Assembly: GCA_964035545.1 (NCBI GenBank)
Contig: OZ037769.1
Span: forward strand, 10,632,633 to 10,696,632
DNA: 64,000 nucleotides
Direction of reading: 5' to 3'
Source of the DNA: Bugula neritina
Lineage: Eukaryota > Animalia > Bryozoa
Below the pieces are notes generated by a model. It was not told the origin of the DNA and made no database searches. It saw nothing but the letters and a program-made list of their open reading frames with translations. Each line of letters begins with the position of its first letter. The stretch's first letter is position 1. Shown piece after piece: positions 14,813 to 17,800 of the stretch. The position numbers and the translations under genes were made by a program.

Positions 14813-17800
14813 ATGGAACTCTCTGCAAGAGGAGATGAAAAGTCTGAGCCAGAGTCAGAGAGAGAGTTCGAAAGTATAACACAAGTACGTGAGTGTTGAC
14901 TTAGAGCTGACAATCTGCAGAAAAACCCATAGGACTATTTCTAATAACAAAACTTGGAACTACATCCAATTTATTTGCAAATTTCTCTGTTACTTCAAGC
15001 TGTCTTCTAGACTTGATTTAAAACTTGTATTCTTAATTTCCTTTAATTGACTATTTTTAGAGCTGGAAATTTTATAGTGTTCTTTTTACGTCTTTGCTGT
15101 TAGCTCTAGCTTATGCTAATTATATAAATTATATATAAACCTGCAGTAACAATAATATATATATATATATATATATATATATATATATATATATATATAT
15201 ATATATATATATATATATATATATATATATATATATATATATATATATATATATATATATATGTATATATACACCTTTTAAATATGCTTTAATAGAAACA
15301 TAAGTTTCTACTATTGCGAAGGTGTGGGCCATGGTACTCTGTTCTGTGCTGATGAGGGGACAAACCTCGAAACAGCTGCTGTCCACAGATTGAGGTATAT
15401 ATATATATATATATATATATATATATATATATATATATATATATATATATATATATATATATATATATATATATATATATATATATATATATATATATAT
15501 ATATATATATATATATATATATATATATATATATATATATATATATATATATATATATTTATATCAATAGTGTTCTTTTTACGTCGTCTTTGCTGTTAGC
15601 TCTAGCTTATGCTAATTATATAAATTATATATAAACCTGCAGTAACAATAATATATATATATATATATATATATATATATATATATATATATATATATAT
15701 ATATATATATAGTATATAGTATATAGTATATATATATAATTATATCAATAATGCAAGAATATGCTTCTGTAGATATGGAGAAATGGACTCGTCTTGTTTA
15801 CAGGATTTCTTCTCCTTTTCACTGCCTTTCAATCTCTACAATTTCTCCAGTCAAGTCTATTTATAGATGAAGGAATGGGTACTACTGTACTGGCTGTTAT
15901 CTATGGCTCTTTGGTAGTATCAGCTTTTTTCTTGCCCTCTCCTATGATAGGCACACTGGGTAAGTCAAGGTAACACTTGAGTATTGCATACATTGACAAA
16001 AATTGTAAAGCAACAGTTGTAACTTTTCTATTTACTAATTCATCTCCATTTGTATGTTTGGGAAACTTCTGGAATTAGATACAACTTTTGTTAATATCTA
16101 TAAAATAAATGTTTAAAAAACTTTTTGCAACGGCAAATAGGAAAATTGCAGTTATATGCATTAGTATTGTGCAAAATACAATTACTTTAATAGTCTTAAT
16201 AACTAAATACTTTAAAATAGAATTTAAATGAAAGAGCTGCAAGATTTTCCAATTCTATATAAAGTGATAATATTTCAAAATGGTTGGTAAATAAAGCCAG
16301 GTGGTGCCATTTTTAATTTCAAAAGCAAATCTGATCATATAATGTATAATTACCGTATTAACATGGGGGTATATCCATGTAACATTTCTAGCCAACAAAA
16401 TTCTGTAAGGTTTTTGGATATAGGTGTGAACTCTTTCAATATATATATTGTCTGGTTATCCAGGCTGCAAGTGGACCCTGTCTATCTCTATGGGCTGCTA
16501 CATCATGTATATGGCAGCTCATTTCTACGCCAGGTGGGAGCTGTTTGTACCGGCTGCAGTCATAGTTGGCATGGGAGCCGCCCCACTCTGGGCATCAAAG
16601 AGCCACTATCTAAACCTGGTAAGTAAACCGTGGGTACAACATGTACCGGTTAATGCCAACCGATATTTGTGTTGTGGCTCTCTGCTGATAACCCGTTTGA
16701 TTAGAAAAATATTTTGCTCTGTATACTTTTAGAAGGTAAAGTTGTTTTCCTTGCATATATAGGCTTGGCTTCAATCACAAAAGTATTCCAGTATAATTTA
16801 TTATACTATTTCAAATAAAAATAGGCAGTTTCTATTGCACCAGCTATTATGCAACTGGGCAGTAATTATACTGGGAGTTGGTATAACTTGTATAATAACC
16901 TTTTAACTCTAATTTCAGATTGCACACAATTATGCCAAGTTGAAGGGAGTGACTAATGATGCAGCAACAAACTTATTTTTTGGAGTTTTCTTCCTGTTTT
17001 TCCAGTCTGGTAAGCTGACATAACTATACTATTATTTTACTAGTTTCAAATGTGCTGCAATATCCTGTGTGGATAGAATAATGTTACGTTATGCAATACA
17101 TGATTATTTAGACATCAAAAACCATTCTCAGATATTCACCATGTTGCTAGTGGAGCCTAATATAAATAGTCTTTATTTGCAACATACATTCCGAGAAAAT
17201 TGATTTAATATGAAGTTATCTCCTTTTTTAGAGCCTAATAAGCAGATTTCTGCAGGTCTATAAAACAAATCTCACTCATTAGTCACGTGACAAACCCAGC
17301 CACGTGCAGCTAGTAGTATAGCAGTATGCAGGTCTAATGAGAAAGGGATTGTTTATGTTTGATTTCTTCAATAATAGGAATTGTAATCTGAAAACATTAG
17401 TGAAGTTATCACATAAAGTTGTAAAGCAGGCTATCAGGTGTAACTTTAGAAACTTGAGTTTTATAACTTTTATATAGATTTAGTGTTGAAAAGCAATTAT
17501 TTTTGCAAAGTTACTAATTCTAGCTAAACTCAGAGCTATAAATATGTCTCTGTGTATATGGAACAGCAATATCAGGTCCATCTATTGGTCGGCTAACAAT
17601 TAATGCTTAACAAATTCAGGGAGGTGAAGCAGTCCTATGCTGCAGTTTAGCCCACATATATATATATATATATATATATATATGCAACAAAAATATTTAC
17701 TCGTAGAATAATATGAAATACTCCAAAGTTGAAGGTCACAAATGGAGAAGTAAGACCATACACAATAAATCTAGCATCAATTTGTTTTGGTGCAGGTTTG

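Follow-up and report, generated by a model that had tools for sequence, protein, structure and literature searches.

A probable 5′-truncated retrozyme copy with a hammerhead motif in an intron of an UNC-93-family gene of the bryozoan Bugula neritina

Results

The hammerhead locus in an UNC-93-family gene

A 64,000-nt stretch of the Bugula neritina genome (assembly GCA_964035545.1, contig OZ037769.1, positions 10,632,633 to 10,696,632 of the forward strand; the whole stretch is hereafter called the window, and positions are counted from its first letter) carries a type I hammerhead ribozyme motif between two long (TA)n tracts in an intron of an UNC-93-family gene (Table 1). The island holding the motif, positions 15268-15397, is very probably a dead-on-arrival, 5′-truncated single copy of a young non-coding hammerhead element, belonging to the animal retrozymes without long terminal repeats (non-LTR retrozymes). 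Read along the plus strand, the locus consists of segment D1, a (TA)n tract, the retrozyme stub, a second (TA)n tract, segment D2, a further (TA)n tract and exon 2 of the gene.

The exons of the gene were searched separately and not as a joined spliced protein; exon 3 was recognized by its UNC-93 profile match, and exon 2 alone gave no Pfam match and no useful PDB match. Exon 2 has no start codon and is directly preceded by an in-frame stop (15770-15772), indicating that a further coding exon lies upstream, for which 14813-14884 is the nearest fit. The ribozyme lies in sense within the putative first coding intron, about 390 nt upstream of the acceptor. A preliminary description of this stretch had placed a sense-strand hammerhead in intron 1 of UNC93A; the sense orientation and the intron of an UNC-93-family gene hold, and the exon 1 assignment, with it the first-coding-intron label, and the orthology to UNC93A are best kept as putative. 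Further along, at an UNC-93 exon donor, a 28-bp unit starting with the consensus 5′ splice site GGTAAGT is repeated 5.5 times in tandem (17951-18103), so that the intron begins with about six potential donor sites. Upstream of the gene, tandem repeats are found at 13469-13605 (periods of 22/46 bp), 13780-13858 (14 bp) and 14197-14262, the last being (GT)33.

Table 1. Features of the hammerhead locus and of the surrounding gene (window positions).
Feature	Position	Strand	Basis and remarks
Putative first coding exon of the UNC-93-family gene	14813-14884	+	From translation; ATG, 24 codons, donor CAA/GTACGT, phase 0
Putative intron 1, 888 bp	14885-15772	+	Holds D1, (TA)n, retrozyme fragment, (TA)n, D2, (TA)n
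D1, 84-bp single-copy segment, directly followed by (TA)n	15075-15158	+	Genome similarity search; duplicated as D2
Left (TA)n tract	15156-15267		(TA)53 at 15156-15261 plus degenerate end; abuts the variable 5′ junction
Probable 5′-truncated solo retrozyme copy	15268/70-15397	+	BLAST against the unit consensus from the L006 array; alignment
Type I hammerhead ribozyme motif	15343-15389	+	Sequence reading, descriptor search, sub-threshold Rfam alignments
C>U change at helix II position 11.2	15367	+	Alignment to consensus, energies; gives a G·U wobble and a shifted register pairing G8/A9
Predicted self-cleavage site	Between C15383 (C17) and C15384	+	Placement of GUC relative to core and helices
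Right (TA)81 tract	15396-15557		Joined to the fixed 3′ end ...GATTGAGGTA
D2, second copy of segment D, followed by (TA)n	15568-15654	+	Identical to D1 except for a 3-bp indel
Exon 2, first transmembrane segment	15773-15959	+	Translation; frame-continuous with exon 3
Exon 3, Pfam UNC-93	16464-16618	+	PF05978, 27.2 bits (cut-off 22.9), E 2.8e-6, profile positions 38-85

Structure and significance of the hammerhead motif

The motif has the topology of a type I hammerhead, with three helices around the core and an open helix I that contains both its 5′ and 3′ ends. Helix I is formed by six perfect base pairs between UCUGUG (15343-15348) and CACAGA (15384-15389), and is followed by the core sequence CUGAUGA at 15349-15355. 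Helix II pairs GGGG (15356-15359) with CCUC (15365-15368) over 4 bp, capped by the loop ACAAA; its closing pair is G15356-C15368, and it includes a wobble between G15357 and U15367, the latter being C in the family consensus. The GAAA of the hammerhead occupies 15369-15372, and helix III is a near-palindromic 4-bp pairing of ACAG (15372-15375) with CUGU (15379-15382) around the loop CUG, leading into the GUC triplet at 15381-15383, in which C15383 corresponds to C17. All 13 core positions and the three helices are intact. This core, together with the 6-bp stem I, the 4-bp stem II and the near-palindromic stem III, had been reported in the preliminary description and was recovered on the plus strand, and the cleavage position given there, after C15383, agrees with the placement of the GUC triplet, core and helices.

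The bare core pattern is not significant by itself, as 0.38 matches are expected per window and 30 of 100 shuffles contained one. The full descriptor, requiring at least 5 bp in helix I and at least 4 bp each in helices II and III in addition to the core, matched once in the window and in none of 1000 shuffled windows. When Rfam was searched permissively, RF03152 aligned to the window copy with core and helices in place at 19.1 bits (threshold 56.3), and a consensus copy of the family described below scored 15.2 bits with RF03152 and 14.9 bits with RF00008 (threshold 48.5). Matches to HH9 and HH10 were absent from the Rfam results on the window.

A dispersed family of 272-nt tandem units

Searching the assembly (216 Mb, 321 contigs, 35% GC, with short introns) with the 129-nt island revealed at least 40 places with 97-100% identity (40 scored among 829 first-look candidates), many of which lie exactly 272 bp apart. 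At one of them, L006, five perfect 272-nt units stand in tandem with (TA)n on both sides, and arrays in the genome reach five units or more. The 35-nt ribozyme gave 480 genome matches at no more than two mismatches, compared with 0 for a reversed control. A sister subfamily with 359 matches is distinguished by a spacing of 271 bp, by UCCC instead of CCCC in helix II and by the 3′ end GAGATA. Copies of the family are dispersed over all large contigs and have unrelated flanks. The unit has a GC content of 45.6% and folds at -109.9 kcal/mol (z = -7.7 versus shuffles); its longest stop-free stretch, examined in a 4-mer, is 49 aa, indicating that it is non-coding. The family accordingly has the make-up of a retrozyme, namely head-to-tail units within the 150-450 bp range that carry a type I hammerhead, with GC below 50% and no LTRs.

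Alignment to the consensus identified the window copy as unit positions 157-272 (the last 116 nt) followed by the 14-nt post-cleavage tail CACAGATTGAGGTA, corresponding to 0.48 unit. It differs from the consensus at two sites, 15292 (G>A) and 15367 (C>U), the second of which is the sole substitution inside its ribozyme. Neither the core pattern scan nor the similarity search found a second retrozyme or hammerhead copy in the window. The preliminary description had spoken of a unique island between (TA)n arrays; the long flanking tracts are indeed present, with the island spanning 15268/70-15397, and it is unique in the window only, being repeated genome-wide. Of the checks suggested there, the genome-wide search for further copies gave hundreds of near-exact ribozyme matches and about 300 insertions joined to (TA)n at the 3′ end.

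Predicted folding of the window copy

Folding energies were obtained as nearest-neighbour predictions, which ignore tertiary contacts. For two consensus copies, the predicted minimum-energy dimer is a double hammerhead in which helix III forms between the molecules over 10 bp (-39.5 versus -31.2 kcal/mol for two monomers), and the hammerhead fold of the consensus monomer is predicted at -13.2 kcal/mol against a minimum of -15.6 kcal/mol. In the window copy, C15367U costs the active fold 3 kcal/mol, leaving it at -10.2 kcal/mol, and a shifted helix II in which the catalytic G8 and A9 are paired is predicted at -12.3 kcal/mol. The monomeric hammerhead fold of this copy lies 4 kcal/mol above its minimum-energy fold, with an ensemble probability of 0.0006 for the active fold. 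A heterodimer of the window and consensus copies is predicted at -38.6 kcal/mol, compared with -14.2 and -15.6 kcal/mol for the separate monomers. The window copy keeps the distal part of helix I that extends past an internal loop, and in the predictions the long (UA)n flanks pair with each other and promote alternative pairings inside the island.

An active solo hammerhead would sever the UNC-93 pre-mRNA in intron 1 and thereby lower or tune expression, as intronic ribozymes do elsewhere. The intact core and helices, the sense orientation and the retained helix I extension speak for this possibility, as do the findings that single hammerhead motifs of some invertebrate retrozymes reach cleavage rates of about 0.8 per min (PMC7229834) and that co-transcriptional splicing faces competition from the intronic Cpeb3 ribozyme (PMC10919898). 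We nevertheless consider it unlikely, given the predicted preference for the register that pairs G8 and A9, the low probability of the active fold, the competing pairings offered by the (UA)n flanks and the lack of a second copy in cis. Furthermore, the 3′ splice site is so close downstream that the polymerase would be there in seconds, as against a half-life of about 1 min at 0.8 per min, and the copy is not a conserved element but one of the ordinary members of a repeat family that looks neutral. Cleavage of the pre-mRNA by the window copy, raised in the preliminary description, is possible but unsupported, with the predicted folding leaning against it. As a solo ribozyme with a destabilizing change in helix II that is removed with the intron, the copy most likely does nothing at the locus.

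Penelope-like elements in the same microsatellites

The window contains no reverse transcriptase or endonuclease coding sequence and no match to a Penelope-like protein. Elsewhere in the genome, the 3′ part of a Hydra-type Penelope-like element was found next to a retrozyme array (L016, positions 1-1145; G000:C5:14267460-14268604). Its open frame includes a CxCx5C linker as well as a GIY-YIG-like endonuclease, and about 240 nt past the stop codon the element has a hammerhead of its own, whose helices measure 4, 6 and 5 bp and whose helix III is fully palindromic. The tail after this hammerhead is joined to (TA)n, and the retrozyme array stands tail-to-tail with it in the same TA tract. The L016 protein gave no Pfam match; as a query, it yielded 820 candidate genome matches, whose open frames reach about 740 aa and which fall into several families, at 100-97%, about 55% and about 47-50% identity. 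At a second, TA-rich locus (L036; G000:C5:11893545-11896591), two decayed retrozyme copies accompany a Penelope-like endonuclease fragment with another, different hammerhead, which is the sole RF00163 match of the genome search (25.4 bits, below threshold). Three unrelated hammerheads in TA-targeted elements share the same architecture with different helices. A third hammerhead-like motif is present at L036 on the opposite strand.

Other searches for such elements were made. The Pfam profile PF01541 (GIY-YIG) was discarded as a route to Penelope-like endonucleases, its single match in the genome being an SLX1-like host gene, and the genome search with Pfam RVT_1 was dominated by reverse transcriptases of long interspersed nuclear elements (LINEs) and LTR elements. 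One match was obtained with a pattern designed for further (TA)n-adjacent hammerheads in which position 10.2 is not G. Candidate Penelope-like copies were also seen near retrozyme-type hammerheads at C3:12317558 (by C3:12318216) and C1:18156721 (by C1:18153775).

Penelope-like elements carry hammerheads in their terminal repeats (pLTRs) and leave short 3′ stubs, and in this genome they are abundant and use (TA)n sites, so that the island might be taken for a fragment of an autonomous Penelope-like pLTR instead of a separate non-autonomous element. Insertion into (TA)n, being common to both kinds of element, does not discriminate between them. The island, however, can be aligned over its whole length with a non-coding tandem unit of 272 nt whose arrays lack coding sequence, and both Penelope-like 3′ regions compared (L016 and L036) carry different hammerheads and have no significant similarity to the retrozyme unit. 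A pLTR origin is on this evidence very unlikely, even though a Penelope-like family with a tail matching the retrozyme could still exist. The remnant of a TA-targeting Penelope-like element or retrozyme proposed in the preliminary description is better described as a TA-targeting hammerhead retroelement, a retrozyme, and not as a piece of a Penelope-like element's own sequence. The link between the retrozyme and a Penelope-like mobilizer is circumstantial; that the two share microsatellites agrees with the published proposal of retrozyme mobilization by such elements, and the link accords with the argument of a 2026 preprint for a Penelope-like terminal-repeat origin of animal retrozymes (10.64898/2026.07.22.740005).

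Insertion pattern and a possible route of spread

The 3′ end is the same in all 21 independent insertions inspected, reading ...CACAGATTGAGGTA (GAGATA in one of them) and joined to (TA)n. By comparison, their 5′ ends vary from unit position 1 to 241 (1, 6, 13, 51, 53, 55, 66, 84, 127, 137, 151, 154, 157, 220, 239 and others), most of them being joined directly to (TA)n. Genome-wide, 299 such 3′ junctions with (TA)n were counted at no more than one mismatch, 73 of them exact, versus 0 in controls. Judged from these junctions, the combination of a fixed 3′ end, graded 5′ truncation and a single (TA)n target is the mark of target-primed reverse transcription. Since the 3′ tail extends 14 nt past the cleavage site, the template RNA must have been continuous across this site, that is, either uncleaved or re-ligated. 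Tandem arrays do occur, two equally truncated copies stand 461 bp apart at L032 like a local DNA duplication, and flank D is locally duplicated in the window, yet it is extremely improbable that the family is a satellite spread by DNA-level processes (unequal exchange, segmental duplication) with an incidental hammerhead, as the copies are dispersed among unrelated flanks, share an invariant 3′ end and one target motif, and are truncated to graded extents at the 5′ end, a pattern expected from reverse transcription from a fixed start and not from recombination.

The family may spread by the following route. Tandem arrays would be transcribed, and the hammerheads, acting alone or paired through an extended helix III, would cut the transcript into 272-nt monomers, which, if published retrozymes are a guide, may be circularized by a host ligase. 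Copying would then be primed by a nicked (TA)n microsatellite annealed to UA-rich sequence 11-18 nt beyond the cleavage site, and the most likely source of the reverse transcriptase is the Hydra-type Penelope-like elements, which reside at these same (TA)n sites. The enzyme would proceed for a variable distance, sometimes for several rounds, so that arrays of one to several units arise whose 3′ end is fixed and whose 5′ ends vary. The multi-unit arrays fit the copying of multimers or circles.

At the window locus, D1 and D2 are the only occurrences of segment D in the genome, which ruled out our consideration of flank D as a repeat or as the tail of another element. Long flank duplication was likewise rejected as a regular feature of retrozyme insertions, being seen in only 2 of the 21. 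D1 and D2 may represent an unusually long target duplication or an unrelated tandem duplication; in the former case, a read-through template would have been the source of the (TA)81 tract beside the stub.

Inverted arrangements of retrozyme copies were also observed. At L031, twin stubs truncated at the same point stand head-to-head, resembling the inverted insertions typical of Penelope-like elements. L033 (positions 8070-8730; G000:C5:15717069-15717729) contains a near-perfect large palindrome of two inverted retrozyme copies, both truncated at unit position 61, whose 5′ ends are each fused to the same unrelated sequence of about 42 nt around a central (TA)n; this sequence recurs after the cleavage site of the right copy, and the arrangement looks like a chimeric or template-switched insertion.

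Discussion

The island in the UNC-93 intron is best understood as a stub of a retrozyme that was copied into a (TA)n microsatellite by target-primed reverse transcription and probably has no effect there. Several results weigh against parts of this reading. The preliminary description had looked to Rfam covariance models for confirmation, which they did not provide: over the whole window no Rfam family reached its gathering score, and RF00163 listed no member of the retrozyme family either in the window or genome-wide. Compensatory changes are also missing from the helices, because the family is too young (97-100% identity) and its diverged copies are merely decaying; the subfamilies differ by G-C versus G·U only, and the older copies carry core mutations. 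Structural support consequently comes from the motif itself and from the three unrelated hammerheads at the 3′ ends of TA-targeted elements. The retrozyme unit shows no significant similarity to the Penelope-like 3′ regions at L016 and L036, which leaves a Penelope-like enzyme as a candidate for the copying enzyme, and the fixed 3′ end could come instead from read-through transcripts ending in (UA)n. Finally, the solo window copy may retain activity, because published hammerheads of invertebrate retrozymes can cleave efficiently as monomers and its 4-bp helix III exceeds the 1-2 bp typical of obligate dimers.

Animal non-LTR retrozymes are built from tandemly repeated units of 150-450 bp that each carry a type I hammerhead, and occur as monomers to multimers; they are non-coding, with GC below 50%, and lack LTRs, primer-binding sites and polypurine tracts (Cervera and de la Pena 2020, PMC7229834; Li et al. 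2026, preprint 10.64898/2026.07.22.740005). They have been proposed to be mobilized by Penelope-like elements (PMC7229834; 10.64898/2026.07.22.740005), and the 2026 preprint argues that they derive from Penelope-like terminal repeats (10.64898/2026.07.22.740005). Retrozyme hammerheads of invertebrates can cleave efficiently as monomers (PMC7229834). The Bugula family agrees with these elements in unit size range, type I hammerhead, low GC, non-coding nature and absence of LTRs; it differs in a strict (TA)n target and an invariant 3′ end that are unusually clean, and the window copy is a half-unit stub and not an array. Our literature search found no paper linking bryozoans to retrozymes or Penelope-like elements.

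Penelope-like elements of the Hydra clade are short, with canonical hammerheads near the 3′ end and a CxCX5C linker before the GIY-YIG domain (Craig et al. 2021, PMC8557442), and almost all of their insertions are into (TA)n (PMC8557442). The element neighbouring the array at L016 shows all of these features, whereas the window copy encodes nothing, has no sequence in common with either Penelope-like tail examined and would be at most a passenger of such elements.

Metazoan type I hammerheads are described as having 6 bp in helix I, 4 bp in helix II and a helix III that is short and palindromic, and as often being active as dimers (PMC4209133). Minimal or dimeric examples include newt satellite 2, Schistosoma Sm-alpha and the terminal repeats of Penelope-like elements (Forster et al. 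1988, as cited in PMC4209133; Cervera and de la Pena 2014, PMC4209133). The Bugula hammerhead has the same 6-bp helix I, 4-bp helix II and near-palindromic helix III, and its dimer is the predicted minimum-energy form, but its helix III, of 4 bp with a 3-nt loop, exceeds the 1-2 bp seen in obligate dimers.

Self-cleaving motifs also occur in introns of amniotes. HH9 and HH10 (RF02275 and RF02277) are intronic self-cleaving hammerheads of amniotes, single-copy and conserved across species. With these and with CPEB3's HDV-like (hepatitis delta virus-like) ribozyme (PMC10919898), the window copy has in common a sense-strand self-cleaving motif type in the intron of a protein-coding gene; in contrast to these single-copy, conserved ribozymes, it is a recent repeat with no sign of conservation.

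The near-palindromic helix III also raises the scenario that intronic stubs in sense are cut in trans by abundant free retrozyme RNA through a double hammerhead. Although the heterodimer modelled above would allow it, we hold such cutting to be highly improbable; if it did take place, RNA of a mobile element would cleave host pre-mRNAs wherever a stub lies in sense.

The window feature is one ordinary copy among about 300 insertions of the retrozyme family, an element of a kind already known, and it probably has no role in its host gene. A single copy of this sort matters little by itself. As a sense intronic stub, it offers a natural test case for harm done by ribozymes to host genes, a question of relevance to the report that retrozymes are depleted from frog introns (preprint 10.64898/2026.07.22.740005). 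For the family as a whole, the invariant 3′ end 14 nt past the cleavage site, the graded 5′ truncations and the strict (TA)n target provide an unusually clean view of animal retrozyme reverse transcription.

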